Positions 10,401 through 62,819 of a DNA stretch of 64,000 nt are shown one piece after another (within the stretch, counting starts at the first letter, position 1; each line of letters begins with the position of its first letter). Location: assembly GCF_039654945.1 (NCBI RefSeq), contig NW_027361792.1, positions 5,456,001 to 5,520,000 of the forward strand, given 5' to 3'. Below the pieces are notes generated by a model. The model saw only the letters and a program-made list of their open reading frames with translations. It made no database searches and had not been told where the DNA came from. The DNA is from Dendrobates tinctorius (Eukaryota). The translations under genes and the position numbers were made by a program.

Positions 10401-13400
10401 AACTAGTCTGCTGTGCTCAAAATGGTCCACTGCTCTCAAACTCACCTGCTGCTCTCAAACTGACCCGCTGCTCTCAAACTGGTGGGCTGTACTCAAACTG
10501 GCCCGCTGCACTCAAACTAGTCTGCTGTGCTCAAAATGGTCCACTGCTCTCAAACTGGCCTGCTGCGCTCAAACTGGCCTGCTGTGCTCAAACTGGCCTG
10601 CTGTGCTCAAACTGGCCTGCTGTGCTCAAACTGGCCTGCTGCTCTCAAACTGGTCTGCTGTGCTCAAACTGGTCTGCTGCGCTCAAACTGGTCTGCTGCG
10701 CTCAAACTGGTCTGCTGCGCTCAAACTGGTGGGCTGTACTCAAACTGGCCCGCTGCACTCAAACTAGTCTGCTGTGCTCAAAATGGTCCACTGCTCTCAA
10801 ACTGGTCTGCTGTGCTCAAACTGGCCTGCTGCGTTCAAACTGACCTGCTGCGCTCAAACTGGTCTGCTGCTCTCAAACTGGTCTGCTGTGTTCAGACTGG
10901 TCTGCTGCACTCAAACTGGTCTGCTGTACTCAAACTGGTCTGCTGCACTCAAAATGGTCTGCTGCTCTCAAACTGGCCTGCTGCTCTCAAACTGGCCTGC
11001 TGCCCTCAAACTGGCCTGCTGCTCTCAAACTGGCCTGCTGCTCTCAAACTGGCCTGCTGCTCTCAAACTGGCCTGCTGCGCTCAAACTGGCCTGCTGCGC
11101 TCAAACTGGCCTGCTGCGCTCAAACTGGCCTGCTGCGCTCAAACTGGCCTGCTGCGCTCAAACTGGTCTGCTGCGCTCAAACTGGCCTGATGCGCTCAAA
11201 CTGGCCTGATGCGCTCAAACTGGTCTGCTGCCCTCAAACTGGTCTGCTGCCCTCAAACTGGTCTGCTGCCCTCAAACTGGTCTGCTGCCCTCAAACTGGT
11301 CTGCTGCCCTCAAACTGGCCCACTGCTCTCAAACTGGTGGGCTGTACTCAAACTAGCCCGCTGCACTCAAACTGGCCTGCTGTGCTCAAAATGGTCCACT
11401 GCTCTCAAACTCGCCTGCTGCGCTCAAACTGTCCTGCTGCTCTCAAACTGGTCTGCTGTGTTCAGACTGGTCTGCTGCACTCACACTGGTCTGCTGCGCT
11501 CAAACTGGTCTGCTGCGCTCAAACTGGTCTGCTGCGCTCAAACTGGTCTGCTGCGCTCAAACTGGCCCACTGCTCTCAAACTGGTGGGCTGTGCTCAAAC
11601 TGGTCTGCTGTGCTCAAACTTGCCCGCTGCACTCAAACTGGTCTGCTGTGCTCAAACTGGCCTGCTGCGTTCAAACTGGTCTGCTGCGCTCAAACTGGTC
11701 TGCTGCGCTCAAACTGGTCTGCTGCGCTCAAACTGGTCTGCTGCGCTCAAACTGGTCTGCTGCGCTCAAACTGGCCTGCTGTGCTCAAACTGGCCTGCTG
11801 CGCTCAAACTTGCCCGCTGCGCTCAAACTGGCCTGCTGCGCTCAAACTGGCCTGCTGCGCTCAAACTGGCCTGCTGCGCTCAAACTGGCCTGCTGCGCTC
11901 AAACTGGCCTGCTGCGCTCAAACTGGCCTGATGCGCTCAAACTGGCCTGATGCGCTCAAACTGGCCTGATGCGCTCAAACTGGTCTGCTGCCCTCAAACT
12001 GGTCTGCTGCCCTCAAACTGGTCTGCTGCCCTCAAACTGGTCTGCTGCCCTCAAACTGGTCTGCTGCCCTCAAACTGGCCCACTGCTCTCAAACTGGTGG
12101 GCTGTACTCAAACTAGCCCGCTGCACTCAAACTGGCCTGCTGTGCTCAAAATGGTCCACTGCTCTCAAACTCGCCTGCTGCGCTCAAACTGTCCTGCTGC
12201 TCTCAAACTGGTCTGCTGTGTTCAGACTGGTCTGCTGCACTCACACTGGTCTGCTGCGCTCAAACTGGTCTGCTGCGCTCAAACTGGTCTGCTGCGCTCA
12301 AACTGGTCTGCTGCGCTCAAACTGGCCCACTGCTCTCAAACTGGTGGGCTGTGCTCAAACTGGTCTGCTGTGCTCAAACTTGCCCGCTGCACTCAAACTG
12401 GTCTGCTGTGCTCAAACTGGCCTGCTGCGTTCAAACTGGTCTGCTGCGCTCAAACTGGTCTGCTGCGCTCAAACTGGTCTGCTGCGCTCAAACTGGTCTG
12501 CTGCGCTCAAACTGGCCTGCTGTGCTCAGACTGGTCTGCTGCACTCAAAATGGTCTGCTGCGCTCAAACTGGTCTGCTGCGCTCAAACTGGTCTGCTGCG
12601 CTCAAACTGGTCTGCTGCACTCAAACTGGTCTGCTGTGTTCAGACTGGTCTGCTGCACTCAAACTGGTCTGCTGTACTCAAACTGGTCTGCTGTGTTCAG
12701 ACTGGTCTGCTGCACTCAAAATGGTCTGCTGCTCTCAAACTGGCCTGCTGCTCTCAAACTGGCCTGCTGCTCTCAAACTGGCCTGCTGCTCTCAAACTGG
12801 CCTGCTGCTCTCAAACTGGCCTGCTGCTCTCAAACTGGCCTGCTGCGCTCAAACTGGCCTGCTGCGCTCAAACTGGCCTGCTGCGCTCAAACTGGCCTGC
12901 TGCGCTCAAACTGGTCTGCTGCGCTCAAACTGGCCTGATGCGCTCAAACTGGTCTGCTGCCCTCTAACTGGTCTGCTGCCCTCTAACTGGTCTGCTGCCC
13001 TCTAACTGGTCTGCTGCCCTCAAACTGGTCTGCTGCCCTCAAACTGGTCTGCTGCCCTCAAACTGGTCTGCTGCCCTCAAACTGGTCTGCTGCCCTCAAA
13101 CTGGTCTGCTGCCCTCAAACTGGTCTGCTGCCCTCAAACTGGCCCGCTGCTCTCAAACTGGTGGGCTGTACTCAAACTAGCCCGCTGCACTCAAACTGGC
13201 CTGCTGTGCTCAAAATGGTCCACTGCTCTCAAACTCGCCTGCTGCGCTCAAACTGTCCTGCTGCTCTCAAACTGGTCTGCTGTGTTCAGACTGGTCTGCT
13301 GCACTCACACTGGTCTGCTGCGCTCAAACTGGTCTGCTGCGCTCAAACTGGTCTGCTGCACTCAAACTGGCCCACTGCTCTCAAACTGGTGGGCTGTGCT

Positions 13401-16400
13401 CAAACTGGTCTGCTGTGCTCAAACTTGCCCGCTGCACTCAAACTGGTCTGCTGTGCTCAAACTGGCCTGCTGCGTTCAAACTGGTCTGCTGCGCTCAAAC
13501 TGGTCTGCTGCGCTCAAACTGGTCTGCTGCGCTCAAACTGGTCTGCTGCGCTCAAACTGGTCTGCTGCGCTCAAACTGGCCTGCTGCGCTCAAACTGGCC
13601 TGCTGCGCTCAAACTCACCTGCTGCTCTCAAACTGGTCTGCTGCGCTCAAACTGGTCTGCTGCGCTCAAACTGGCCTGCTGCGCTCAAACTGGTCTGCTG
13701 CGCTCAAACTGGCCTGCTGCGCTCAAACTGGCCTGCTGCGCTCAAACTGGCCTGCTGCGCTCAAACTGGCCTGCTGTGCTCAGACTGGCCTGCTGTGCTC
13801 AGACTGGCCTGCTGTGCTCAGACTGGTCTGCTGTGCTCAGACTGGTCTGCTGCTCTCAAACTGGCCTGCTGCGCTCAAACTGGCCTGCTGCGCTCAAACT
13901 GGCCTGCTGCGCTCAAACTGGTCTGCTGCGTTCAAACTGGCCTGCTGCGCTCAAACTGGTCTGCTGCGCTCAAACTGGCCTGCTGCGCTCAAACTGGCCT
14001 GCTGCGCTCAAACTCACCTGCTGCTCTCAAACTGGTCTGCTGCGCTCAAACTGGTCTGCTGCGCTCAAACTGGTCTGCTGCGCTCAAACTGGTCTGCTGC
14101 GCTCAAACTGGCCTGCTGCGCTCAAACTGGCCTACTGCGCTCAAACTGGCCTGCTGCGCTCAGACTGGCCTGCTGTGCTCAGACTGGCCTGCTGTGCTCA
14201 GACTGGTCTGCTGCTCTCAAACTGGTCTGCTGCGCTCAAACTGGCCTGCTGCGCTCAAACTGGCCTGCTGCGTTCAAACTGGCCTGCTGCGCTCAAACTG
14301 GTCTGCTGCGCTCAAACTGGCCTGCTGCGCTCAAACTGGCCTGCTGCGCTCAAACTCACCTGCTGCTCTCAAACTGGTCTGCTGTGTTCAGACTGGTCTG
14401 CTGCACTCAAACTGGTCTGCTGTGTTCAGACTGGTCTGCTGCACTCAAAATGGTCTGCTGCACTCAAAATGGTCTGCTGCTCTCAAACTGGCCTGCTGCT
14501 CTCAAACTGGCCTGCTGCTCTCAAACTGGCCTGCTGCTCTCAAACTGGCCTGCTGCTCTCAAACTGGCCTGCTGCTCTCAAACTGGCCTGCTGCGCTCAA
14601 ACTGGCCTGCTGCGCTCAAACTGGCCTGCTGCGCTCAAACTGGCCTGCTGCGCTCAAACTGGTCTGCTGCGCTCAAACTGGCCTGCTGCGCTCAAAATGG
14701 CCTGCTGCGCTCAAAATGGCCTGCTGCGCTCAAAATGGCCTGCTGCGCTCAAACTGGCCTGCTGCCCTCAAACTGGCCTGCTGCCCTCAAACTGGCCTGC
14801 TGCCCTCAAACTGGTCTGCTGCCCTCAAACTGGTCTGCTGCCCTCAAACTGGTCTGCTGCCCTCAAACTGGCCCACTGCTCTCAAACTGGTGGGCTGTAC
14901 TCAAACTAGCCCGCTGCACTCAAACTGGCCTGCTGTGCTCAAAATGGTCCACTGCTCTCAAACTCGCCTGCTGCGCTCAAACTGTCCTGCTGCTCTCAAA
15001 CTGGTCTGCTGTGTTCAGACTGGTCTGCTGCGCTCAAACTGGTCTGCTGCGCTCAAACTGGTCTGCTGCGCTCAAACTGGCCCACTGCTCTCAAACTGGT
15101 GGGCTGTGCTCAAACTGGTCTGCTGTGCTCAAACTTGCCCGCTGCACTCAAACTGGTCTGCTGCGCTCAAACTGGCCCACTGCTCTCAAACTGGTCTGCT
15201 GTGCTCAAACTGGCCTGCTGCGCTCAAACTGGCCTGCTGCGCTCAAACTGGCCTGCTGCGTTCAAACTGGCCTGCTGCGCTCAAACTGGTCTGCTGCGTT
15301 CAAACTGGCCTGCTGCGCTCAAACTGGTCTGCTGCGCTCAAACTGGCCTGCTGCGCTCAAACTGGTCTGCTGCGCTCAAACTGGCCTGCTGTGCTCAAAC
15401 TGGCCTGCTGCGCTCAAACTGGCCTGCTGCGCACAAACTGGTCTGCTGCGCTCAAACTGGTCTGCTGCGCTCAAACTGGTCTGCTGTGCTCAAAATGGTC
15501 TGCTGTGCTCAAACTGGCCTGCTGCTCTCAAACTGGCATGCTGCGCTCAAACTGGTCTGCTGTGCTCAAACTGGTCTGCTGCGCTCAAACTGGCATGCTG
15601 CGCTCAAACTGGTCTGCTGCGCTCAAACTGGCATGCTGCGCTCAAACTGGCCTGCTGCGCTCAAACTGGCCTGCTGCGCTCAAAATGGTCTGCTGCGCTC
15701 AGACTGGCCTGCTGCGCTCAGACTAGTGAACCTGTCTGCATCCTACTGACCTCGATACATCCTGTAAGTAGAAAGTTTCGTCTACTATATCAGCAGCGCA
15801 AGGGAAGCTGGCAGGTTGTCTGAGAAGATAATAGTTCTGCAGATACCTCTGTGGATGGACTCACCTGAGGTGCTATTGACACAGAATGTGGATCTGATGT
15901 TCGGACAGTCTCTGATCAAAATACCAACATTATAATCAGAACACGCTTTAAATGGTGTCAGACGGAGCATGACAAGCCTCCTCTCCTCTATCCAGCCCCA
16001 CCTGGTTTAAAAAAGAAAGTTACATATCAGCTTTACTGTACATTTTCCCCCACGAAACAAAACCTCCCACCTCTCATTGCTGCAAACGATAGAGACTAAG
16101 GCTATGTGCACACGGTGCGGATCCTCCCGCCGATTTTTCCTGCGGATTTCTTCCTTTTTTTTGCAGTTTTACTGCGGTTTTCCACCTGCGGATTTGTAGA
16201 ATGGAGCAGGTGAAAAACTGCAGCAAAACCGCACAAAAGAAGTCACATGCTGCTTTTTATTTTCCGCACAAAAACAGCGCGGAAAAATCCGCAGCATGTG
16301 CACCGCGCTTTTTTTTTTTTTACATACGCTATAATGGTACTGTACATCACCTGCAGTTCTGCTGCGGATCCGCAGTAGAAACCGCACCGTGTGCACAGAG

Positions 16401-34300: not shown

Positions 34301-37300
34301 TGACGCCCCACCATAGGAGTGCCAGGACAGCTGTGACCGGGGGTCTTCGTTAGGTCCCCAGGGTGCTATAATAATGCACTTGTATTGCAGGCGGGTTGCC
34401 AACCGTTGCCCGAATGGACACCAGGATCCTTTCACACCATTAAATGCCGCTGCAGGTGATCGTCAGGAATGAAATAGCAGCGACTGGAGCTAGTCCTGAT
34501 CACTGCTGTTAGAGGCAGGTGCTGGCTGTATGGCGCAGGGCGCACCTGTCCAGGATGGAGCAGACTTCCCTCCCGAGTCATCCTGTATCTGTCACATTTT
34601 GCATCACATACAGCCCCGGCTCCGTGTACTCACCGTATTCTGTAGGTGAAGAAGTAATGTGGAGGGTGGATGGAGCTGAGCTCCGGCAGGAAGGACGTGG
34701 AGACGGATATGGTGATGTCATCAGTAGTGGCCACGCAGTCCTTTTCCCGCTCGTACCTGGCAGAGAGAACAGGGAATAGGTAAAACTAAGGGAGGCCGGT
34801 GACCGATTGCACGTGTACGGCTCTAGGGAATTATGTCACAGCCGCACTAGTGTGCAATAATGACGATATATTCTAAGATCTGAGTCTGGCGCCACCCGGT
34901 GGCTCCATCGCATACTGATCTGATGTCATTTCCAAATTTTTGCACTACCCACGTATGGAAAAAAGCTCAATCACGATAAAAAAAAAAAAAAAGTTTGTCA
35001 ACTTTTCTAATAAAGTTTTGTATGTTAATTGTGCACCAATCAACATTCCAGCTTGCTGTCTTGTCTGTGAATGGAAACCTTTTTTTGGGAAGGGGGGAAA
35101 TTCAATCTAGAAGAAAGAAAAAATGTCCTAAGGCTACATGTCTGAGCTGTGTCAGCGGGACATTATCTGGATTTTCAGCCTCTGGGTGTAATCAATGCAT
35201 TTATTCACTGACAGCAAGCATAGTTATCGAAAATATTCATGAAATTTAGGAAAAACCTTAAAGTACACATGCACACAGTGAAACCGGACCACAGTAGTGA
35301 CGAGATCAATCTGCGATACCTGAAAATCTGGTCCCGGATGATGGGGTAGTCCTTCGAGACGACACGGTTCACATACGACGTAAACCACTGGGTGAAAGAG
35401 GTACCTGCGGCAGGAAACTGACAACATGAAATCACAGCGTTCATGCGGAGCAGTGACGAGCCTATGGCTGCTCCTGCAGAGCCCCCTGGACACACGCATG
35501 ATCATTTCAGCAGAGCGTGCACAATGAGAATGGGGGAGGAAATCGCTTCCATGGTTTCTACTTGCGGTTCTTCCCCACTGGGAACAAAAGGATCAAGCCA
35601 GAAGCAATCCAACTGCTGACTTCTCTCTAGCAGACATGTCATTGTGAGACCCACCCCATAAATAGTCAATGCTTGGCTCAAAATCAGCAGTTATGGCCGA
35701 CCTTAAAGGGGTCGGCTACCTCTGTAATAACACTTTTCAATACCTCCAAGGTCCAAAAGCAGAAAAAAAACAAAAACCTCCCCTCCTGGACCGAGACTGC
35801 TACTTGTGCTGTGCCCCCAGCGACCTTGTGACATTGTTTGTCATATAAGCGCTGCAGCCAATCAGCCACCGATTGTCTGCAGCCTCCACAATTCAATCAC
35901 GAATGATCGGAAATCATAGGATCGCTGGTGGTCACATTGCAGGCCGGCCCAGGGAGGCAATTTGCTTCTTTTTTTTTTTTCCTTACATTTTGTTGTGCAT
36001 AAAGGAAGTATTCACAAGGAGCTGTACAATAGTGAACAACCCCTTTAATATATATATTTTTTTTTACGGGACTTAAGGCCTTTTTTGCCCCTCGCAGATC
36101 CTACCTGTAATAAACATGTCCAGGGCCGCGGGGTTATGCGTCGTCTGGTCCTAAAACACAGAAGGATCCAATTATGTGGAACAACTTTCATCACAAACGT
36201 CCTAATAAATATCACAGTAAGGAACAACGCGAAACCCGGAGCATCAGCAGCAGTGGTACAGCCAGACCATCCTGCTGGGACTTGTAGTCTCTTACCGGAC
36301 ACTGGTAGAAGATCTCATTGCGACACCGGCCTTCCGTGTCCGCCAGAGACAAGTACTGACTGAGGCCGGTGTGGATGCAGAAGGTGATTGGAAGGCACTG
36401 ATTGAGGCCGATCCTGCGCTGGTAGCCGCCCGCCGCCGTGTCTATGTCCAACAAGTCCTCGGACCGGTAGTGGTTGGATAACGCCATGCTGCCCATCAAG
36501 CTGAGGGGAGGTGAAGGGTGAGAGACGCACGACGGTAGGAGGTAAAGCAGCAGCTGCGCCATCGGGTGCCGGCTCTTACCCAGGTACCACAAGCTTCTGT
36601 CCGTTGTGAATCCGCAGGGAGCAGCGATAATCGTCGGGGAGTTTGGAGCCGATCCTTTCCTCGATGGTGTTAAGATCCTCCTCCTGCACGCCGTCTACAG
36701 GAGAGCGGAGGGAGAAGGCGAGGAGAGCGGAGGGAGAAGGCGAGGAGAGCGGAGGGAGAAGGCGAGGAGAGCGGAGGGAGAAGGCGAGGAGAGCGGAGGG
36801 AGAAGGCGAGGAGAGCGGAGGGAGAAGGCGAGGAGAGCGGAGGGAGAAGGCGAGGAGAGCGGAGGGAGAAGGCGAGGAGAGCGGAGGGAGAAGGCGAGGA
36901 GAGCGGAGGGAGAAGGCGAGGAGAGCGGAGGGAGAAGGCGAGGAGAGCGGAGGGAGAAGGCGAGGAGAGCGGAGGGAGAAGGCGAGGAGAGCGGAGGGAA
37001 AAGGCGAGGAGAGCGGAGGGAGAAGGCGAGGAGAGCGGAGGGAGAAGGCGAGGAGAGCGGAGGGAGAAGGCGAGGAGAGCGGAGGGAGAAGGCGAGGAGA
37101 GCGGAGGGAGAAGGCGAGGAGAGCGGAGGGAGAAGGCGAGGAGAGCGGAGGGAGAAGGCGAGGAGAGCGGAGGGAGAAGGCGAGGAGAGCGGAGGGAGAA
37201 GGCGAGGAGAGCGGAGGGAGAAGGCGAGGAGAGCGGAGGGAGAAGGCGAGGAGAGCGGAGGGAGAAGGCGAGGAGAGCGGAGGGAGAAGGCGAGGAGAGC

Positions 37301-40300
37301 GGAGGGAGAAGGCGAGGAGAGCGGAGGGAGAAGGCGAGGAGAGCGGAGGGAGAAGGCGAGGAGAGCGGAGGGAGAAGGCGAGGAGAGCGGAGGGAGAAGG
37401 CGAGGAGAGCGGAGGGAGAAGGCGAGGAGAGCGGAGGGAGAAGGCGAGGAGAGCGGAGGGAGAAGGCGAGGAGAGCGGAGGGAGAAGGCGAGGAGAGCGG
37501 AGGGAGAAGGCGAGGAGAGCGGAGGGAGAAGGCGAGGAGAGCGGAGGGAGAAGGCGAGGAGAGCGGAGGGAGAAGGCGAGGAGAGCGGAGGGAGAAGGCG
37601 AGGAGAGCGGAGGGAGAAGGCGAGGAGAGCGGAGGGAGAAGGCGAGGAGAGCGGAGGGAGAAGGCGAGGAGAGCGGAGGGAGAAGGCGAGGAGAGCGGAG
37701 GGAGAAGGCGAGGAGAGCGGAGGGAGAAGGCGAGGAGAGCGGAGGGAGAAGGCGAGGAGAGCGGAGGGAGAAGGCGAGAAGGGAAGGAGGCTCCGGTTAC
37801 AGTAAGTCACAGCATGAAAAAGTGCCAATATCGCTCATAAATAGAAGCGCTATCATACGGCAGTCACAAAACCCAAACCTTGCAGACAGACCAACATTCT
37901 TGCAAGTTTTCTTTTTGCATCTCATCCTACTGATTGTCTTGGCTTCTAGCCTGTTTTACCATTACCTCCAGAGCTGCATTCAGAAATCTGCAGTATGACA
38001 TCAGTCTGGAAGAAGCATTTTCTGCTGCACTGCATTGTCAGGATGTAGTGAGCACATCGGGCTTGTACCAAACAGTCGGTGACATCCCCAGCACAGTGAT
38101 CAGCGGAAGTTTGAATACAGCTCCGGAGGTGTAACAAAATACTGCTCCTTTATACAATACCTTTCAGAGAACTGATCATCCGGGGGCAGTGTTCTCCCAG
38201 ATAGGCCTTCAGGGTGTCCCAGGCCGCCTTCAGCTTGGCGTAATGATGCATGTACCTTCCCAAATCATTATAATATTCCAAAAATGTCACCTTCCAGCTG
38301 CAGTTCTTCTGGGCCTTCTTGTCCCTGGAAGAAGACACTAGACTTTATTAGCCATCGTTAGAAGCTGAGTTTTTCAGAGGCGCATGCAATAAAAAAAAAA
38401 AAAAAAAAAAATTGGGACCCATAGGTGGACAACCCCTTTAAGAGAAAAAAAGCTGCAAACCACAGAACCTGAGGTCATGGGGTTAAATCCGCTGCAAACA
38501 TGTGACACGTCTGCATGCGACGCCGGGTGGATTTTGCTGCAGGATCCATTGCGCCCACTTACTCGGACACCAGCCAGTACCGCCGGCACGGCCACTTCCA
38601 CAGGGGATCATGGTTGCACAGTTGGTTAAATCTTCTGTTCAGGAGACTGCAGCTGTAATATATAGATAAAGAAGGGGATGGTAACCGGCAGTCGCAGGGT
38701 CAATAAGGGCACAGATCAGATTATTAACCACTTAATGCCTGATCCATCATGCCTCCATGGGATCAGCTCCAACCCCTCTTGTTTAACCCCCTAGGTGCTG
38801 CTGTCCCTACTAACCACAGTGTATGGGGTGGTCAGACAGAGGGGCTCCCCACGTCAGCCCATCGCCCCAGAGAGGGGGGAGCCACAGGAGGAGAGCCGGA
38901 ATGGGGCCGACATGTGGGGGGGGGGGGGGGGGCGGCTGTTTACTGCTCCCAGGATCTGTCCCCACCAGATACCGATCCCTCAGGGGCCTCTAATAACAAC
39001 TGCTTATCTCCGGGCTCCATGTGCAAACACTGACGATGCAGAACCACAGCCCAAAGTAAAGATCAGGAGGAAGACAGAGGGAGAGGAGGCCTCCAGCCAG
39101 CAGAACAGCGCCACCCGAGTGCACGGGCGACGGCCCGAATTACAGCTCCGGCCCCGGACAGGTGGGGGGAGGGGGCGGTGATGGGAAAATAACCCAGATT
39201 TCAGTCTTTGCAATCTGCAGCAAAACGGCAGAGCGGGTGTGTCGCGAGGTTCCGCAGCAGCCGGGGAGCACGTCACAATGTCCGACAGGTAAAAGTCTTG
39301 TGAAACGCACAGTCACGATAAACCTGCCCCACAACCTCCATCTTGCCCTCGGACGGGGTTTTCTTTTGCCATTTCTCAGACACAGAGTCGGACAGATCCA
39401 CGGGGCCCCCCCATACACAGTGCCGGCCGGACCCGCGGGGACCCCCCATACACAGTGCCGGCCGGACGCGCGGGGACCCCCCATACACAGTGCCGGCCGG
39501 ACGCGCGGGGACCCCCCATACACAGTGCCAGCCGGACGCGCGGGGACCCCCATACACAGTGCCAGCCGGACGCGCGGGGACCCCCATACACAGTGCCGGC
39601 CGGACCCGGGGCCCCCATACACAGTGCCGGCTGGACCCACGGGGCCCCCCATACACAGTGCCGGCCGGACCCGTGGGGACCCCCATACACAGTGCCGGCC
39701 GGACCCGGGGCCCCCATACACAGTGCCGGCCGGACCCGCGGGGACCCCCATACACAGTGCCGGCCGGACCCGTGGGGACCCCCATACACAGTGCCGGCCA
39801 GACCCGCGGGGCCCCCATACACAGTGCCGGCCGGACGCGCGGGGACCCCCATACACAGTGCCGGCCGGACGCGCGGGGACCCCCATACACAGTGCCGGCC
39901 GGACCCGCGGGGACCCCCATACACAGTGCCGGCCGGACCCGGGGCCCCCATACTCAGTGCCGGCTGGACCCACGGGGCCCCCCATACACAGTGCCGGCCG
40001 GACCCGCGGGGACCCCCATACACAGTGCCGGCCGGACCCGGGGCCCCCATACTCAGTGCCGGCCGGACCCGTGGGGACCCCCATACACAGTGCCGGCCGG
40101 ACCCGGGGCCCCCATACTCAGTGCCGGCTGGACCCACGGGGCCCCCCATACACAGTGCCGGCCGGACCCGCGGGGACCCCCATACACAGTGCCGGCCGGA
40201 CCCGGGGCCCCCATACTCAGTGCCGGCCGGACCCGTGGGGACCCCCATACACAGTGCCGGCCAGACCCCGCGGGGACCCCCATACACAGTGCCGGCCAGA

Positions 40301-40823
40301 CCCACGGGGCCCCCATACACAGTGCCGGCCGGACCCGCGGGGACCCCCATACACAGTGCCGGCCGGACCCACGGGGACCCTCATACACAGTGCCGGCCGG
40401 ACCCACGGGGACCCCCCCATACACAGTGTCGGCCGGACCCACGGGGACCCTCATACACAGTGTCGGCCGGACCCACGGGGACCCCCCCATACACAGTGCC
40501 GGCCAGACCCCGTGGGGACCCCCATACACAGTGCCGGCCGGACCCGGGCCCCCCCCATACACAGTGCCGGCCGGACCCGGGGCCCCCATACACAGTGCCA
40601 GACAAGGCGTCGTCATGGCGACTATGCTATATCCACACTGATAGCCAGGACTCTCCGCTGTCAGTGGTGACTCGCTGTCCGGCCAGGTCCGGTCCGTGCG
40701 GTGCATAAGGCGGAGCAGCCGCCACTGATACCTCAGCAGGTCCCGGAAGTCCAGGTAGGACAGGATCAGCAGCAGCGGGTCGGACGGCAGCTCCGCCAGA
40801 CTCAGCTCCGTGCTCCCCGCCAT
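31246..40823 (-). CDS. FBXO3: F-box only protein 3 (F-box, SMI1/KNR4-SUKH and ApaG domains), 11 coding exons, 450 aa
   Basis: Exons 40823-40732, 38652-38563, 38324-38161, 36694-36580, 36500-36296, 36150-36105, 35404-35320, 34756-34634, 33719-33604, 32380-32190, 31371-31246; all GT-AG, 1353 nt in frame. Motifs LPSDPLLLILSYLD, GSMALSNHYRSEDLLD, ACQLDSRYWRIT...EEVQGPGVVG and YEYTSCTTF match FBXO3 as I recall it. Confidence 0.97.
31680..32125 (+). mobile_element. Tc1-like transposase remnant in FBXO3 intron 10
   Basis: PYITKHNAERRIEWC...VLCSDGSHFS and LPPDCIVPPV resemble Tc1 motifs (VLWSDES, IVPTVK). Confidence 0.7.
32190..32380 (-). CDS. FBXO3: FBXO3 exon 10
   Basis: DYPQLRPGRGYEYTSCTTFSTTSGYMEG...PRFHMKCPTFRVSTIST. 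Confidence 0.95.
33340..33490. mobile_element. Short palindromic MITE in FBXO3 intron 9
   Basis: gggtcacccttgcgagaaactcgcac... / ...gtgcgagtttcttgcaagtgtgacccc. Confidence 0.6.
33604..33719 (-). CDS. FBXO3: FBXO3 exon 9
   Basis: MEMAKNALPEKACQLDSRYWRITDAKGNVEEVQGPGVV. Confidence 0.96.
34634..34756 (-). CDS. FBXO3: FBXO3 exon 8 (ApaG start)
   Basis: YEREKDCVATTDDITISVSTSFLPELSSIHPPHYFFTYRI. Confidence 0.95.
35320..35404 (-). CDS. FBXO3: FBXO3 exon 7
   Basis: TSFTQWFTSYVNRVVSKDYPIIRDQIF. Confidence 0.95.
36105..36150 (-). CDS. FBXO3: FBXO3 exon 6
   Basis: DQTTHNPAALDMFIT, 46 nt. Confidence 0.92.
36296..36500 (-). CDS. FBXO3: FBXO3 exon 5
   Basis: LMGSMALSNHYRSEDLLDIDTAAGG...EIFYQCP. Confidence 0.96.
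36580..36694 (-). CDS. FBXO3: FBXO3 exon 4
   Basis: GVQEEDLNTIEERIGSKLPDDYRCSLRIHNGQKLVVP. Confidence 0.95.
36698..37778. repeat. 22-bp purine-rich minisatellite (GAGAGCGGAGGGAGAAGGCGAG)n, ~49 near-perfect copies
   Basis: Visible periodicity, one variant unit near 36991; abuts the FBXO3 exon 4 acceptor. Confidence 0.97.
38161..38324 (-). CDS. FBXO3: FBXO3 exon 3
   Basis: DKKAQKNCSWK...LGEHCPRMISSLK. Confidence 0.95.
38563..38652 (-). CDS. FBXO3: FBXO3 exon 2
   Basis: CSLLNRRFNQLCNHDPLWKWPCRRYWLVS; canonical splice sites. Confidence 0.93.
39401..40603. repeat. ~33-bp GC-rich minisatellite in FBXO3 intron 1
   Basis: Unit CCCATACACAGTGCCGGCCGGACCCGCGGGGAC with variants. Confidence 0.95.
40732..40823 (-). 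CDS. FBXO3: FBXO3 exon 1 (F-box start)
   Basis: MAGSTELSLAELPSDPLLLILSYLDFRDLL; aagATGG Kozak context; donor AG|GTATCA. Confidence 0.95.
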
Positions 40824-41613: not shown

Positions 41614-44175
41614 TTACAATGGCTGATAACACCTCTATATACAGTAGATAACACAGGATTCACCATTCACAATAGGTGGTGTCACAGCTCACCTCCCCCT
41701 CCTGCACAATGACTGATAACACCTCTATATACAGCAGATAACACAGGATCCACCATTGACAATAGGCGATATCACAGCTCACCTCCTCCTCCTGTACAAT
41801 GACTGATAACACCTCTATATACAGTAGATAACACAGGATCCACCATTCACAATAGGTGGTGTCACAGCTCACCTCCTCCTCCTGTACAATGACTGATAAC
41901 ACCTCTATATACAGTAGATAACACAGGATCCACCATTCACAATAGGTGGTGTTACAGCTCACCTCCTCCTGTACAATCACAGATAACACCTCTATATACA
42001 GTAGATAACACAGGATCCACCATTGACAATAGGTGATATCACAGCTCACCTCCTCCTCCTGTACAATGGCTGATAACACCTCTATATACAGTAGATAACA
42101 CAGGATCCACCATTCACAATAGGTGATATCACAGCTCACCTCCTCCTCCTGTACAACGACTGATAACACCTCTATATACAGCAGATAACACAGGATCCAC
42201 CATTGACAATAGGTGATATCACAGCTCACCTCCTCCTCCTTTACAATGACTGATAACACCTCTATATACAGCTGATAACACAGGATCCACCATTCACAAA
42301 AGGTGATATCACAGCTCACCTCCTCCTCCTGTACAACGACTGATAACACCTCTATATACAGCAGATAACACAGGATCCACCATTGACAATAAGTGATATC
42401 ACAGCTCACCTCCTCCTCCTTTACAATGACTGATAACACCTCTATATACAGTAGATAACACAGGATCCACCATTCACAGTAGGTGATATCACAGCTCACC
42501 TCCTCCTCCTATACAATGACTGATAACACCTCTATATACAGCTGATAACACAGGATCCACCATTGACAATAGGTGATATCACAGCTCACCTCCTCCTCCT
42601 GTACAATGACTGATATCACCTCTATATACAGCAGATAACACAGGATCCACCATTCACAATAGGTGATATCACAGCTCACCTCCTCCTCCTGTACAACGAC
42701 TGATAACACCTCTATATACAGCAGATAACACAGGATCCACCATTGACAATAGGTGATATCACAGCTCACCTCCTCCTACTGTACAATGACTAATAACACC
42801 TCTATATACAGTACATAACAGAGGATCCACCAATCACAACAAATGATGTCACAGCTCACCTCCTCCTCCTGTACAATGACTGATAACACCTCTATATACA
42901 GTAAGTAACACACGATCCACCATTCACAATAGGTGATGTCACAGTTCACCTCCTCCTCCTCCTGTATAATGACTGATAACACCTCTATATACAGTAGATA
43001 ACACAGGATCCACCATTCACAATAGGTGATATCACAGCTCACCTCCTCCTCCTATACAATGACTGATAACACCTCTACAGTATATACAGTAAGTAACACA
43101 GGATCCACCATTCACAATAGGTGATGTCACAGTTCACCTCCTCCTCCTCCTGTATAATGACTGATAACACCTCTATATACAGTAGATAACACAGGATCCA
43201 CCATTCACAATAGGTGATGTCACAGTTCACCTCCTCCTGTACAATGACTGATAACACCTCTATATACAGTAAGTAACACAGGATCCACCATTCACAATAG
43301 GTGATGTCACAGTTCACCTCCTCCTCCTCCTGTATAATGACTGATAACACCTCTATATACAGTAGATAACACAGGATCCACCATTCACAATAGGTGATAT
43401 CACAGCTCACCTCCTCCTCCTATACAATGACTGATAACACCTCTACAGTATATACAGTAAGTAACACAGGATCCACCATTCACAATAGGTGATGTCACAG
43501 TTCACCTCCTCCTCCTCCTGTATAATGACTGATAACACCTCTATATACAGTAGATAACACAGGATCCACCATTCACAATAGGTGATATCACAGCTCACCT
43601 CCTCCTCCTGTACAATGACTGATAACACCTCTATATACAGTAAGTAACACAGGATCCACCATTCACAATAGGTGATGTCACAGTTCACCTCCTCCTCCTC
43701 CTGTATAATGACTGATAACACCTCTATATACAGTAGATAACACAGGATCCACCATTCACAATAGGTGATATCACAGCTCACCTCCTCCTCCTATACAATG
43801 ACTGATAACACCTCTACAGTATATACAGTAAGTAACACAGGATCCACCATTCACAATAGGTGATGTCACAGTTCACCTCCTCCTCCTCCTGTATAATGAC
43901 TGATAACACCTCTATATACAGTAGATAACACAGGATCCACCATTCACAATAGGTGATGTTACAGCTCACCTCCTCCTCCTGTACAATGACTGATAACACC
44001 TCTATATACAGTAGATAACACAGGATCCACCATTCACAATAGGTGATATCACAGCTCACCTCCTCCTCCTATACAATGACTGATAATACCTCTATATACA
44101 GTAGATAACACAGGATCCACCATTCACAATAGATGATGTCACAGCTCACCTCCTCCTCCTCCTCTTTACACAATG
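41614..44175 (-). repeat. Same ~90-bp satellite in the opposite orientation, ~28 copies
   Basis: Reverse complement of the 7752-8420 unit; spurious SCDITYCEWW ORFs. Confidence 0.95.
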
Positions 44176-52654: not shown

Positions 52655-52874
52655 CTACATCATCCCGTTAAGTTTGGTCCATTCGTAGATGTCCTGCTCG
52701 CACACAATGTCCGAGTTGATGAGCAGGTAACGGTCACCGACACAGAAATGTTTCTGACAAGCCGCGCACTTGAAGCACTCCAGGTGGTAGACTTTGTCCT
52801 TCACCCGCATGGTCATTTCGTAGGCTCGGATCCTCTTGTCACATGAGGCGCACAAACCGTCCTGACCAAAAAGC
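52655..52874 (-). CDS. LMO2: LMO2 LIM2 exon and stop
   Basis: [24 protein letters not shown]...EWTKLNGMM*. Confidence 0.98.
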
Positions 52875-55450
52875 CTGGAAAGAGAATCACAAACAGGATA
52901 CTGTTATGGGGAGCACAAAATGATAGGAGTCATGGCTGCCACCATGGGAATGGTCCAATGGATGATACAATGTGGGATGACCGACTGTACAATGTGGACT
53001 GAAGGACTCTACAATATGTGATGAAGGACTCTACAATGTGGGATGATGGGCTGTACAATGTGGGATGATGGGCTGTACAATGTGGGATGATGGGCTGTAC
53101 GATGGAGGATGACGGGCTGTACGATGGAGGATGACGGGCTGTACGATGGAGGATGACGGGCTGTACGATGGGGATGAAGGACTCTACAATGGGGGATGAA
53201 GGACTCTACGATGGGGGATGACGGACTGTAAGATGGGGGATGACGCACTCTACGATGAGGGATGATGGACTCTACGATGGGGATGACGGACTGTACAATG
53301 GGGGACAATGGACTGTACAATCGGGGATGAAGGACTGTGCAATGGGGGATGAAGGACTGTATGATGTGGGCTGAAGGACTCTACAATATGTGATGATGGA
53401 ATGTACAATGTGGGATGATGGGCTGTACAATGGGGATGACGGACTGTACGATGTGGCATGACGGACTGTACAATGGGGATGAAGGACTCTACAATGGGGG
53501 AAGACGGTCTGTACAATGTGGGATGATGGACTCTACAATGGGGGAAGACGGTCTGTACAATGTGGGATGACGGACTGTACGATGTGGCATGACGGACTGT
53601 ACAATGGGGATGACGGACTGTACGATGTGGCATGACGGACTGTACAATGTGGGATGATGGACTCTACAATGGGGAAAGACGGTCTGTACAATGTGGGATG
53701 ATGGACTCTACAATGGGGGAAGACGGTCTGTACAATGTGGGATGATGGACTCTACAATGGGGGAAGACGGACTGTACAATGTGTGATGACGGACTGTACA
53801 ATGTGGGATAATGGACTGTATAATGGGAGATGATGAACTGTACAGTTGGGGAAGACGGACTGTACAATGTGGGATGATGGACTGGTCAATGTTGGAAGAT
53901 GGGCTGGGATGTACCGTGTGGGATAATGGACTGTACAATGGGGAATGATGGAATGTACGATATTGGATGATGGACTGTACAATGGGGGATGATGGGCTGG
54001 GATGTATCCTGTGGGATGACGGACTGTACAATATGTGATGATGTAGGTGATTACCTATGAAATGTCTGATGATGGACATTACAATCATGTATCGGTTGTA
54101 CTCTACATGTATGATGGTGGCATATAGAGCGTAAACCATTTTCTCTACCTTAAGTAATCTCTCCGGCACAACTTGCGTCCTAATTTGTAGTAAAGTCTCC
54201 TCCCGACTTCCCCTAACCGGCATCCACACAGGTCACAGCTTAGACAGTCCTCGTGCCAATATTGGTCGATGGCCTTTAGGAAGTAGCGGTCCCCAATATT
54301 TTGCTGGCAACCCCCACATGTCAAAAGTGAAGGTGGGATCTGCAGGACTTCATCCACGGGCTCACTGTTGGGAAACAATATTCATAGAGGTCACGGTGTG
54401 TGGACATTGTAAGATGTCTTTCCGTATCACCTGCCATCTGCCAAGCAGAAGTCATTAGCGGAGTAGACCACCAAGTGGCTGTCACCTCTGGATGAGGGTC
54501 ACCCACAGGGTGCAGAATGGCCGAGTGCACACTGCACCACCTGCACTTGTGAATTTTAACACAACAGTGTGGCTTAAATATTTCTCTATCTAATGGGCTA
54601 GTGAGCGTCCTATTCCCGAAGCCATCGGAAAACTTCCTATCCCCCAACCAAAATTCACATATCCAAAAACCAAGATGAGTCCTCAGCCAGCGACACAGAA
54701 AAGCACGTGGCACGATGGAGAAACACATGGCGTCCGCTCTGCATCCTGACCTGTCTACTAATAACCCATTTATGGAGGACTGCCGATATTGGCAAGACAC
54801 ATACACTTTTTAGGAAAACATTCCAAACAGCTACTAAATGTATCACCTCTAGTCTGGGGTCCTCCTGACTAATACTGGGGTACAGAAGGATCGGGCAATG
54901 TTGACTTACCCCCCGGGAGCTTTTCTGCAAAGCAGGCCATCAGTAAATCACTGTGCCTGGGATACAGGGGTATTGGGTCCAGAGGCAAGGACCACCCCTG
55001 GTTCTCACACATCCCCCAGTCATGCATCAGCTCGGAAGATAGGAAAACGATGGGAGCAGCAAAACCGAAAATATGAGTTCTGTTCTCCGCTGATAAGTTG
55101 CTCAAAAGTTTATTCAGCTGCTTCATAAATGTACGGGAAGGACAGTGACCACTAGAATGACGGCATTACAGACCGTGTCGGACTGGGGCCCCCAGAGCTC
55201 ACCAGTAACCATCCCCAAGGCCCCACCTTTCAGCTACATGCAAATGTGACATTATCCTCAATCACAAATTTATATAACAATGAACTGGATGGATTGTTAA
55301 ATGAATAAGATGCCGCCTTTGTATATAGTGACTCATGTATACTGTGCCAAGTACTGCTCATATACGAGGGGGGTGGCCCACCGGAGGATTCTCCTGTTCT
55401 CCTATGGGACAGTCCAGGCCTGATTACAGATCTGGCTGAGGTTGTCACTC

Positions 55451-58348: not shown

Positions 58349-61300
58349 ATCTGTCCCGATAGACTGCAACCACCAACCAACTGGGCCAAATACTGCAACC
58401 ACCAAGCATCTGTCCCGATAGACTGTAACCACCAACCAACTGGGCCAAATACTGCAACCACCAAGCATCTGTGCTGATATACTGTAACCACCAACCAACT
58501 GTGCCAAATACTGCAACAACCAAGCATCTGTGCTGATATACTGTAACCACCAACCAACTGGGCCAAATACTGCAACCACCAAGCATCTGTGCCAATAGAC
58601 TGCAACCACCAACCAACTGGGCCAAATACTGCAACCACCAAGCATCTGTGCTGATATACTGTAACCACCAACCAACTGGGCCAAATACTGCAACAACCAA
58701 GCATCTGTGCCGATAGACTGTAACCACCAACCAACTGGGCCAAATACTGCAACCACCAAGCATCTGTCCCGATAGACTGTAACCACCAACCAACTGGGCC
58801 AAATACTGCAACCACCAAGCATCTGTGCTGATATACTGTAACCACCAACCAACTGTGCCAAATACTGCAACAACCAAGCATCTGTGCTGATATACTGTAA
58901 CCACCAACCAACTGGGCCAAATACTGCAACCACCAAGCATCTGTGCCAATAGACTGCAACCACCAACCAACTGGGCCAAATACTGCAACCACCAAGCATC
59001 TGTGCTGATATACTGTAACCACCAACCAACTGTGCCAAATACTGCAACAACCAAGCATCTGTGCCGATAGACTGTAACCACCAACCAACTGGGCCAAATA
59101 CTGCAACAACCAAGCATCTGTGCCGATAGACTGTAACCACCAACCAACTGGGCCAAATACTGCAACAACCAAGCATCTGTGCCGATAGACTGTAACCACC
59201 AACCAACTGGGCCAAATACTGCAACCACCAAGCATCTGTGCTGATATACTGTAACCACCAACCAACTGGGCCAAATACTGCAACCACCAAGCATCTGTGC
59301 CGATAGACTGTAACCACCAACCAACTGGGCCAAATACTGCAACAACCAAGCATCTGTGCCGATAGACTGTAACCACCAACCAACTGGGCCAAATACTGCA
59401 ACAACCAAGCATCTGTGCCGATAGACTGTAACCACCAACCAACTGGGCCAAATACTGCAACCACCAAGCATCTGTGCTGATATACTGTAACCACCAACCA
59501 ACTGGGCCAAATACTGCAACCACCAAGCATCTGTGCCGATAGACTGTAACCACCAACCAACTGGGCCAAATACTGCAACCACCAAGCATCTGTGCTGATA
59601 TACTGTAACCACCAACCAACTGTGCCAAATACTGCAACAACCAAGCATCTGTGCCGATAGACTGTAACCACCAACCAACTGGGCCAAATACTGCAACCAC
59701 CAAGCATCTGTGCTGATATACTGTAACCACCAACCAACTGGGCCAAATACTGCAACCACCAAGCATCTGTGCCAATAGACTGCAACCACCAACCAACTGG
59801 GCCAAATACTGCAACCACCAAGCATCTGTGCCAATAGACTGCAACCACCAACCAACTGGGCCAAATACTGCAACCACCAAGCATCTGTGCCGATAGACTG
59901 CAACCACCAACCAACTGGGCCAAATACTGTAAACACCAAGCATCTGTGCCGATAGACTGTAACCACCAACCAACTGGGCCAAATACTGCAACCACCAAGC
60001 ATCTGTGCCGATAGACTGTAACCACCAACCAACTGGGCCAAATACTGCAACCACCAAGCATCTGTGCCAATAGACTGCAACCACCAACCAACTGGGCCAA
60101 ATACTGCAACCACCAAGCATCTGTGCCGATAGACTGCAACCACCAACCAACTGGGCCAAATACTGTAAACACCAAGCATCTGTGCCGATAGACTGTAACC
60201 ACCAACCAACTGGGCCAAATACTGCAACCACCAAGCATCTGTGCCGATAGACTGTAACCACCAACCAACTGGGCCAAATACTGCAACCACCAAGCATCTG
60301 TGCCAATAGACTGCAACCACCAACCAACTGGGCCAAATACTGCAACCACCAAGCATCTGTGCCGATAGACTGTAACCACCAACCAACTGGGCCAAATACT
60401 GTAAACACCAAGCATCTGTGCCGATAGACTATAACCACCAACCAACTGGGCCAAATACTGCAACCACCAAGCATCTGTGCTGATAGACTGTAACCACCAA
60501 CTAACTGGGCCAAATACTGTAACCACCAAGCATCTGTGCCGATAGACTGTAACCACCAACCAACTGGGCCAAATACTGCAACCACCAAGCATCTGTGCTG
60601 ATATACTGTAACCACCAACCAACTGGGCCAATTACTGTAACCACCAAGCATCTGTGTCGATAGACTGTAACCACCAAGCATCTGTACCGATAGACTGTAG
60701 CCACCAACCAACTGGGCCAAATACTGCAAAAACCAAGCATCTCTGCTGATATACTGTAACCACTAACCAACTGGGCCAAAAACTGCAACCACCAAGCATC
60801 TCTGCTGATATACTGTAACCACCAACCAACTGGGCCAAATACTGCAACCACCAAGCATCTGTGCTGATATACTGTAACCACCAACCAACTGGGCCAAATA
60901 CTGTAACTACCAAGCATCTGTGCCGATAGACTGTAACCACCAACCAACTTGGCCAAATACTGCAACCACCAAGCATCTGTGCTGATATACTGTAACCACC
61001 AACCAACTGGGCCAAATACTGTAACTAACAAGCATCTGTGCCAATAGACTGTAACCACCAAGCATCTGTACCGATAGACTGTAACCACCAACCAACTGGG
61101 CCAAATACTGCAACCACCAAGCATCTGTGCTGATATACTGTAACCACCAACTGGGCCAAATACTGCAACCACCAAGCATCTGTGCTGATATACTGTAACC
61201 ACCAACCAACTGGGCCAAATACTGTAACCACCAAGCATCTGTGCCGATAGACTATAACCACCAACCAACTGGGCCAAATACTGCAACCACCAAGCATCTG

Positions 61301-61535
61301 TGCCGATAGACTATAACCACCAACCAACTGGGCCAAATACTGCAACCACCAAGAATCTGTGCCGATAGACTGTAACCACCAACCGACTGGGCCAAATACT
61401 GCAACCACCAAGCATCTGTGCCGATAGACTGCAACCACCAACCAACTGGGCCAAATACTGCAACCACCAAGCATCTGTGCCGATAGACTGTAACCACCAA
61501 CCAACTGGGCCAAATACTGCAACCACCAAGCATCT
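58349..61535. repeat. 59-bp satellite (dimer of ~30-bp subunits), ~54 copies, upstream of LMO2
   Basis: GATAGACTGTAACCACCAACCAACTGGGCCAAATACTGCAACCACCAAGCATCTGTGCC. Confidence 0.96.
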
Positions 61536-62819
61536 ATGTCATAGGCTGTTATATGTTTGATAAGAGTGTTGCATTTTATACTTATGGCTGGCTTGTGTCT
61601 CGGTTCTCTGGGAGACTCTGACTCAACGCTGTCCCTGGAAATAGGGGGATTCCTGTCCACTAGGGGAATCTGAGGATCTGACTGCTAGGACCCCAACTGA
61701 TCAGAGATCGGGGCTCGGGAACAAAGCTTCAGCCGTATCTTGAAGAGAGCGGATTTGCTCCTGCTCCATTCCGGTCTATGGGACTGTCGAGCACAGCGCT
61801 CGCTTCATTCAGGACGGGGTTGCAGTTCCTCGTTTTTGTTATTGCTGTTCTGTGTCAGATCCCCATAAATCAGCAAGTTATCTCCAGCCTACAGATGGGG
61901 GATGAATTGTATATATATATTTTTTTTTTTTTTTGCAGTGTCTGTTTACTCACTAATGATTTTTGCAGGAAAGTATTTGGTCTTCAGCACCAAAAAGAGC
62001 TTGAATCCGGCATCTGATCCGGACCCAGAGAAGGTCCGCATCACACAAAACCTAATTATGGTAAGACGCTTGTTAATATTCTGACAGCCTGCAGCCACCA
62101 CTAGGGGGAGCTCTCACTGACCTCAGTGTACAGGCCCCATTGATGTCTGTGTGGAAGCTCCACTGCTCCCCCTAGTGGAAGACGGATGCATATCTTTGGT
62201 GATGAAAACGGAGGTGTTACAGCTTGGTATGAGGACAATAATCTCCAGCTAGAAAAGATATATCATGAAATGAATCTGTTCTGATTACCGGACTTTCTGC
62301 AGTCTGTTCTGATCACAAGTGAGTTTTCTGCTGCATTATCACCCTAATCTATGACACAAGACGCCATTACCCTGGGGAAGGGCGGCCGTCCGCCATGGTT
62401 CCTGGAGGTTTTGTCCACGCCGGCTTTTCCTCTGACCACGGAAGAAGCCTACATTTCTACAGGGCGCATTAGAGCGTCTGGACTTGTCTTCTATTTCTGA
62501 ATGTCGGTTGTGTCAATCCAAATGTCAGACTGACAGATAAGTGTGATGGCGGCTTTATGGATCGATTCATTGAAGCCGCTTATTTCGCTAAACTTTTAAT
62601 CGCGGCTTTAAAATGTCAGTGTTTTTCTGCTCGCAAAGTTCATGTTGGTTCAGCTGAAATGTCAGAACCTGGTGTGAGAAGGAGACACAATATCCTGGAA
62701 GCCGATGGGAGCATTCCTGGCACTTTTATCCTTTCTCTTGGGACTATACCGAAGCTGCACCGTCCACTAAAGGCTCAGTGTCCTGTAGTGCTCTGCACCC
62801 CATGAAAAGCTGCATTGTA

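Follow-up and report, generated by a model that had tools for sequence, protein, structure and literature searches.

How does the spliceosome complete the removal of an intron whose last kilobase before the acceptor contains no adenosine? This question is raised by intron 3 of FBXO3, which lies on the minus strand of a 64,000-nucleotide (nt) stretch of the Dendrobates tinctorius genome (contig NW_027361792.1, positions 5,456,001 to 5,520,000; hereafter the window). A first-pass annotation had reported that the plus strand carries no T from 36697 to 37791, leaving the pre-mRNA without A for about 1095 nt immediately before the acceptor, and base counts bear this out (A 351, C 100, G 644, T 0). 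The same stretch of pre-mRNA is also free of AG dinucleotides, and the second-longest T-free run on the plus strand of the window is 43 nt. Splicing of the assembled allele, if it occurs, logically requires a branch either far upstream or at a nucleotide other than adenosine, the two alternatives that the annotation had set out. Results of our analyses point to the first of them, a branch at a retained CUUAC/GUAAC sequence at −1109/−1103 followed by a second step that takes the first AG downstream, and we assign this reading a probability of about 0.5.

The A-free run is extreme because an A-free unit is repeated, and its significance is one of position, not of statistics. Tandem Repeats Finder reported a single array here, with period 22 (Table 1), and a head-to-tail array with a unit of 10-100 bp is a minisatellite (variable number tandem repeat, VNTR). 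On the gene strand the unit reads CGCCTTCTCCCTCCGCTCTCCT; 47 of the 49 units are identical, and one variant unit, near 37000, carries a C-to-T change. The A-free run ends in ...CTCTCCTGTAG and passes directly into the start of exon 4, ACGGCGTG. Neither the window nor the 100 kb of related loci compared contains a further copy of the 22-nt unit, which speaks against a dispersed repeat family. The annotation had called the tract a polypyrimidine tract; it is indeed A-free and rich in pyrimidines, but not purely pyrimidine, consisting as RNA of 59% C (644), 32% U (351) and 9% G (100), with a longest unbroken C/U run of 15 nt.

The array has two CpG per unit, and the A-free stretch as a whole has 98 CpG in 1095 bp (observed/expected about 1.7, G+C 68%), which makes it formally as CpG-dense as a CpG island, though intronic. 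Decay of CpG to CpA or TpG is nowhere visible in the array except for the C-to-T unit variant near 37000. In the last full unit, one mutation of CpG to CpA would convert CUCGC into CUCAC, a perfect yUnAy at about −25, and no such change is present among the 98 array CpG sites. The unchanged CpG sites fit an array that is very young or continually homogenised.

The identity of the gene is clear. The translation of exon 4 matches FBXO3 proteins from 45 vertebrates, human and other mammals among them, the best matches being those of poison frogs, and tblastn locates 11 FBXO3 coding exons on the minus strand, in agreement with annotated FBXO3 proteins. The predicted protein is closest to Dendrobates tinctorius FBXO3, and the gene span of XP_073397883.1 (GCA_039654945.1, JAYMGB010000159.1) is letter-for-letter identical to the window. 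The exon-by-exon match, together with F-box, SMI1_KNR4 and ApaG (DUF525) domains, identifies the gene as the FBXO3 orthologue, and the protein search and tblastn thus uphold both the gene name and the 115-nt coding exon 4 given by the annotation.

For evidence from RNA we used assembled contigs, which drop rare forms, over positions 35000-36920. They came from four runs, three of D. tinctorius from three studies (X6, X15 and X36) and one of a relative (X20), which differs from the window at five positions in exon 4. Each run yielded a spliced contig with exons 7, 6, 5 and 4 in order, and past 36696 these contigs continue with TTCAGAGAACTGATCATCCGGGGGCAGTGT, which matches the 3′ end of exon 3 in reverse complement. 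The junction of exon 3 with exon 4, which we infer from the loose ends of the contigs, therefore falls precisely at the AG behind the array. The AG after the array, proposed as the acceptor from the sequence, is the acceptor used in mature mRNA in all four runs. Exon 4 inclusion, suggested by the annotation as a check, is likewise seen in all four, and neither exon 4 skipping nor read-through from exon 4 into the array was found in their contigs, from which rare forms drop out. Exon 4 is apparently constitutive in the contigs, and skipping it would shift the reading frame because of its length of 115 nt.

Several other ways of handling the intron were considered and rejected. The donor GUAUUG is unlike the RUAUCCUU of U12-type introns. 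Recursive splicing within the array would require an internal AG/GU site, which is impossible without A. Use of the array as an exon starting from the upstream GAG would add 1096 nt, a length not divisible by 3, and no such contig was seen.

As the contigs represent particular individuals, it has to be asked whether the 49-copy array is the template of the mRNAs seen at all. The array might be mis-assembled, or belong to a rare or poorly spliced long allele; the transcripts would then come from shorter alleles, and the long allele would give retention or skipping followed by decay. Near-perfect arrays are usually variable in length, which counts toward this view, and no array contig was recovered from X6 or X15. 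At position 36582, moreover, the window has A on the plus strand (CCT, Pro, on the gene strand) and all four RNA runs have G (CCC), a synonymous difference, so that the RNA comes from haplotypes other than the assembled one. The six other assemblies compared have G or C at this position, never A; the allele of the window, a synonymous one lying 3 nt away from the donor of exon 4, is thus derived and could tag the long-array haplotype. At the same time, the assembly was built with hifiasm from PacBio HiFi reads longer than 10 kb and checked for errors with Inspector (bioRxiv 10.1101/2023.11.06.565769). Such reads span 1.1 kb many times over, which makes an over-expansion of the array unlikely, and much longer arrays of the window were resolved in the same assembly. 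In X36, from another individual and study, we found a 52-nt contig identical to the array; a perfect 22-nt repeat that closes into a cycle at k=31 would have this size. The contig had a depth of 55, against 2.3 for another intron contig (about 24-fold lower) and 22.6 for the mRNA, which fits tens of collapsed array copies at an ordinary intron level in a second individual, although the argument is rough and other loci may contribute. Taken together, we regard it as improbable that the assembled array is irrelevant to the mRNAs. The relative (run X20) gave unit-like contigs of 49 nt and 54 nt (matching 36714-36755 and 36870-36912), of which one lacks 3 nt and the other has an inserted CG; their sizes fit closed cycles of perfect repeats with periods of 19 and 24. 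That species may carry a related array.

Comparison of the FBXO3 locus with six other assemblies (Table 2) indicates how the intron came to this state. The first 369 nt of D. tinctorius intron 3 are 87-92% identical to the whole Ranitomeya or Phyllobates intron, and in alignments the block GCTGTGACTTA.T.TAAC.GGAGCC is conserved in Dendrobates, Ranitomeya and Phyllobates. In Ranitomeya, the block is followed by TGATTCCCTTYGTGCAG and then by exon 4. Phyllobates terribilis has an extra single segment, ..CCTCCGCTCCCATCGTCTTC.., between the block and the acceptor, which is identical to the D. tinctorius unit at 18 of 22 positions. In D. tinctorius, the 49 units occupy exactly the interval from the conserved GCTGTGACT...GGAGCC block to the acceptor; Ranitomeya, Phyllobates, Anomaloglossus and Hyla lack the array. 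The orthologous introns and the Phyllobates proto-unit thus identify the array as a tandem amplification of part of the ancestral pyrimidine tract. On this comparative evidence, the array arose in the Dendrobates lineage after its split from Phyllobates and Ranitomeya and now parts the conserved, branch-site-like block from the acceptor by about 1.1 kb. Because the unit contains no A, its expansion brought in neither an AG nor a new acceptor or adenosine branch site. The earlier proposal that expansion of the pyrimidine tract pushed the branch point about 1.1 kb away is therefore borne out by the orthologues as regards the expansion and the displacement of the block; that the branch is used there is a prediction.

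Table 2. Intron 3 of FBXO3 in Dendrobates tinctorius and related frogs
Species	Intron 3 (nt)	A-free run before AG (nt)	AG-free zone (nt)
Dendrobates tinctorius (window)	1466	1095	1096
Ranitomeya variabilis	435	12	19
Ranitomeya imitator (two assemblies)	430	12	19
Phyllobates terribilis	437	13	47
Anomaloglossus baeobatrachus	346	21	38
Hyla sarda	2007	21	32

What remains available for branching in D. tinctorius lies just beyond the array. The sequence contains, as the annotation had noted, GTGAC, CTTAC and GTAAC within the cluster GUGACUUACUGUAAC, followed by GGAG at 37794-37791; its GAG is 6-12 nt downstream of the CUUAC/GUAAC adenosines. No adenosine occurs within 1097 nt of the acceptor, the conventional 18-40 nt included. 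Ranitomeya and Phyllobates share the corresponding block, GCTGTGACT..A..AC, at 25-60 nt from the acceptor, and their adenosines occur at −15 to −36 and −16 to −60, respectively. The gene models of both relatives bypass the same GAG and start exon 4 only from a downstream CAG.

By its sequence, FBXO3 intron 3 appears to have the distant-branch architecture with an AG-exclusion zone. The AG-free zone, for which the class requires at least 150 nt, extends over 1096 nt, as compared with 19-47 nt in the five related species. Consensus-like branch sites occur within about 15 nt upstream of the zone (CUUAC at −1109, GUAAC at −1104/−1103; zone edge at −1097). The RNA is C/U-rich from 6 nt after GUAAC onwards, which provides an adjacent downstream pyrimidine tract, the quality of which as a U2AF2 site is uncertain given its C-richness. 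The search rule of Gooding et al. 2006 (PMC1431707) looks for a yUnAy in the 15 nt before the AG-free zone, and it predicts a branch at CUUAC or GUAAC.

We propose that SF1/U2AF, followed by U2 snRNP, would assemble on the retained CUUAC/GUAAC and the pyrimidine-rich sequence directly after it, as in the ancestor. The first step, independent of an AG, would form the lariat at this site, perhaps ahead of transcription of the acceptor. The second step would then take the first usable AG: the GAG 6-12 nt away would be too close and too poor, as in the relatives, and because the array has no AG, the authentic acceptor is the first one available. Definition of exon 4 may help to bring this AG to the spliceosome, through its strong donor GUAAGA and its purine-rich start; the latter, AGGAGGAGGA, is invariant in the alignment of all dendrobatid orthologues compared and is a possible exonic enhancer. 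A 3′ splice site can be used without a close tether to the branch, as bimolecular exon-ligation experiments have indicated. We favour the distant adenosine because the layout of branch site and pyrimidine-rich tract is unchanged from the ancestor, because the upstream site is transcribed about 1.1 kb ahead of the acceptor, and because adenosine is strongly preferred as the branch nucleotide. It makes up 78% of branch nucleotides in the data of Mercer et al. (PMC4315302) and 83% in constitutive introns according to Pineda and Bradley (PMC5959240). Distal branch sites are also known to coincide with adjacent U2AF2 binding (PMC5378181). A minimum-free-energy fold spanning exon 3 to exon 4 with the intron between them paired 26% of the array nucleotides and shortened the path between the candidate branch sites and the acceptor from about 1100 to about 240 steps; it was computed without a control for so long and low-complexity a sequence and was not relied on.

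A number of observations weigh against the distant adenosine. The longest mapped distances between branch and acceptor are about 400 nt (PMC1431707), so that 1.1 kb is an extrapolation and CUUAC/GUAAC a predicted site. The array, C-rich and with short U runs, would be a weak U2AF2 substrate. The RNA comes from individuals whose haplotypes differ from the assembly and whose arrays may differ from it in length. Nor is the continuity of the branch site assured: the relatives have the yUnAy CUGAU at −15 (Ranitomeya), −43 (Phyllobates) and −29 (Anomaloglossus), and the corresponding position in D. tinctorius (37785-37789) reads CUCCU, the adenosine of this probable ancestral branch site having been lost. 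Finally, nearness to the acceptor, and not complementarity to U2, best predicts the use of human branch points (PMC5959240), and by a simple count the array heptamers UUCUC[C]C (−17, −39) and CGCUC[U]C (−30), like other C, U and G sites of the array, pair with U2 snRNA as well as CUUAC does. The U2 pairing count was accordingly discarded as a discriminator, as it did not separate the upstream adenosines from the array sites.

These last points lead directly to the second alternative, a branch at C, U or G inside the array at the usual distance, for example at the bracketed residues of the above heptamers, with U2AF on the final units before the AG. In that case the upstream adenosines would play no part, and the lariat would have a short tail and, if C-branched, could resist debranching. 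Non-A branch points account for 17-23% of those mapped in human (PMC4315302, PMC5959240), and vertebrate cells are known to contain stable C-branched lariats (PMC6112733). Yet non-A branches are less efficient (PMC4315302), some non-A calls from lariat data are suspected to be errors (PMC5959240), and the stable lariats of frog do not show the C bias (PMC6112733). In FBXO3, an intact A-containing site with its adjacent pyrimidine tract is transcribed before any array site. The array depth of 55 in X36 is what 49 collapsed copies at the ordinary intron signal should give, and thus, on this rough estimate, there is no sign of a stable lariat. We therefore consider a branch inside the array possible but less probable than the retained CUUAC/GUAAC.

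Could the array have been selected as a regulator? Its C-rich repeats might recruit poly-C-binding or pyrimidine-tract-binding (PTB) proteins, and its length might set exon 4 inclusion and hence FBXO3 dose, the tuning that the annotation had suggested. The array offers 50 CCCU/UCCC patches and 49 UUCUC motifs, skipping of the 115-nt exon would be consequential for the frame, and distal branch points occur preferentially before regulated exons and within introns that are retained (PMC5959240, PMC5378181). High-affinity PTB motifs are absent from the array (no UCUU, no CUCUCU), which rules out a strongly PTB-binding array, and neither a skipped nor a retained form was present in the contigs of the four runs. 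The absence of the array from the four related genera and the near-identity of its units fit recent neutral growth. Minisatellites make up about 18.5 kb (29%) of the 64-kb window, and such arrays therefore arise everywhere in this genome. Selection as a regulator is very unlikely on these grounds, and the most fitting view of the array is that of an accident tolerated in a minisatellite-rich genome, not of a designed regulator.

A length-variable repeat between branch site and acceptor is familiar from CFTR intron 8, in which (TG)m(T)n precedes exon 9. There the tract length differs by tens of nucleotides, with a measured effect on skipping, whereas the FBXO3 array comprises 1.1 kb of a 22-nt unit. 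The closest relatives in architecture are exons with AG-exclusion zones, such as alpha-tropomyosin exon 3, PTBP1 exon 11 and HTR4 (PMC1431707), with which FBXO3 shares a consensus branch sequence at the 5′ edge of the zone, pyrimidine-rich sequence next to it and a close AG that is bypassed. For PTBP1 exon 11, the branch at −351 was confirmed by mutation (Gooding et al. 2006, PMC1431707). The mapped cases lie at 100-400 nt, with −566 predicted in Fugu (PMC1431707), as against about 1100 nt in FBXO3 intron 3. Their zones contain adenosines, are conserved and are regulatory, whereas the FBXO3 zone lacks A, is a young minisatellite and precedes an exon that looks constitutive. A human PTPRS intron has an AG-free zone of 1126 nt (PMC1431707), the same size as in FBXO3, but with candidate adenosine sites at −171 and −288; in FBXO3 there is none within 1097 nt and this conventional escape is closed. 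A repeat-caused AG-free zone of 369 nt (PMC1431707) is a precedent for an AG-less repeat before a working acceptor, although it keeps a good branch site at −17. If the branch lies inside the array, the applicable precedents are non-A branch points and C-branched lariats (Mercer et al. 2015; Talhouarne and Gall 2018). Those are minor or alternative branches in introns that have adenosines, whereas a non-A branch would be obligatory over the proximal kilobase of FBXO3. Set against the known distant-branch cases, FBXO3 intron 3 differs in its scale, in its lack of adenosine, in its recent minisatellite origin and in serving an apparently constitutive, frame-critical exon.

Table 1. Coordinates of FBXO3 features in the window; the last column gives positions relative to the acceptor
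Feature	Position	Strand	Basis or remark	Relative position
Coding exon 1	40868-40734	−	tblastn	
Coding exon 2	38654-38562	−	tblastn	
Coding exon 3, ends ...TCTCTGAAAG before donor	38161..38329	−	tblastn, Ranitomeya FBXO3 residues 75-133	
Intron 3, 1466 nt	36695..38160	−	GT..AG, weak U2-type donor GUAUUG, ends UGUAG	
Branch-site-like cluster GUGACUUACUGUAAC, retained	37796..37810	−	sequence; branch use predicted	
GUGAC, candidate adenosine	37809			−1115
CUUAC, candidate adenosine	37803		only yUnAy within 15 nt upstream of AG-free zone	−1109
GUAAC, candidate adenosines	37798/37797			−1104/−1103
GAG, last AG before acceptor	37791..37793	−	5′ edge of AG-free zone	AG at −1098/−1097
A-free, AG-free pre-mRNA stretch	36697..37791	−	base counts	
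22-bp minisatellite, 49.1 copies, 99% matches	36699..37778	−	Tandem Repeats Finder	
Acceptor AG (UGUAG/A)	36695..36696	−	spliced mRNA contigs, four runs	
Coding exon 4, 115 nt, part of SMI1_KNR4 domain	36580..36694	−	tblastn; exon 4-exon 5 joint in contigs	
Purine-rich AGGAGGAGGA, start of exon 4	36676..36685	−	sequence	
Coding exon 5	36295..36500	−	tblastn; joints in contigs	

Other minisatellites of the window include a 19-mer array of 6.4 kb (9337-15724), a 59-mer array of 3.2 kb (58349-61549), a 90-mer array of 2.5 kb (41615-44160) and, in FBXO3 intron 1, a 34-mer array of 1.2 kb (39408-40599). The 90-bp array at 41615-44160 and another at 7752-8420 have units that are reverse complements of each other and form one family; these inverted arrays are 33 kb apart and flank FBXO3. 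Two open reading frames on the minus strand (52655-52855 and 54145-54378), recognised by eye, we take to be LIM-domain exons of LMO2, the neighbour of FBXO3 in other vertebrates. A further 22-bp array (52966-54041) is located in the intron between them.

At roughly even odds, then, an apparently constitutive vertebrate intron ligates its exons with a branch adenosine some 1100 nt ahead of the acceptor, which would be about threefold the largest mapped distance, across an unstructured C/U-rich spacer made by a recent minisatellite expansion. Should the branch instead lie inside the array, this would be the first known intron wholly dependent on non-adenosine branch points. Either outcome would provide a natural substrate for how the spliceosome finds the 3′ AG, as the reach of the second step to the AG and sole reliance on non-A branching have been studied mostly with artificial substrates and with a few regulated exons of up to 400 nt. 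The sister genera serve as controls without the insert, and Phyllobates as a one-unit intermediate. The spacer precedes a frame-critical exon of a conserved ubiquitin-ligase gene, and its history illustrates a rule of tolerance by which only AG-free expansions survive between branch site and acceptor. Such a rule may shape the growth of introns in the giant genomes of amphibians.

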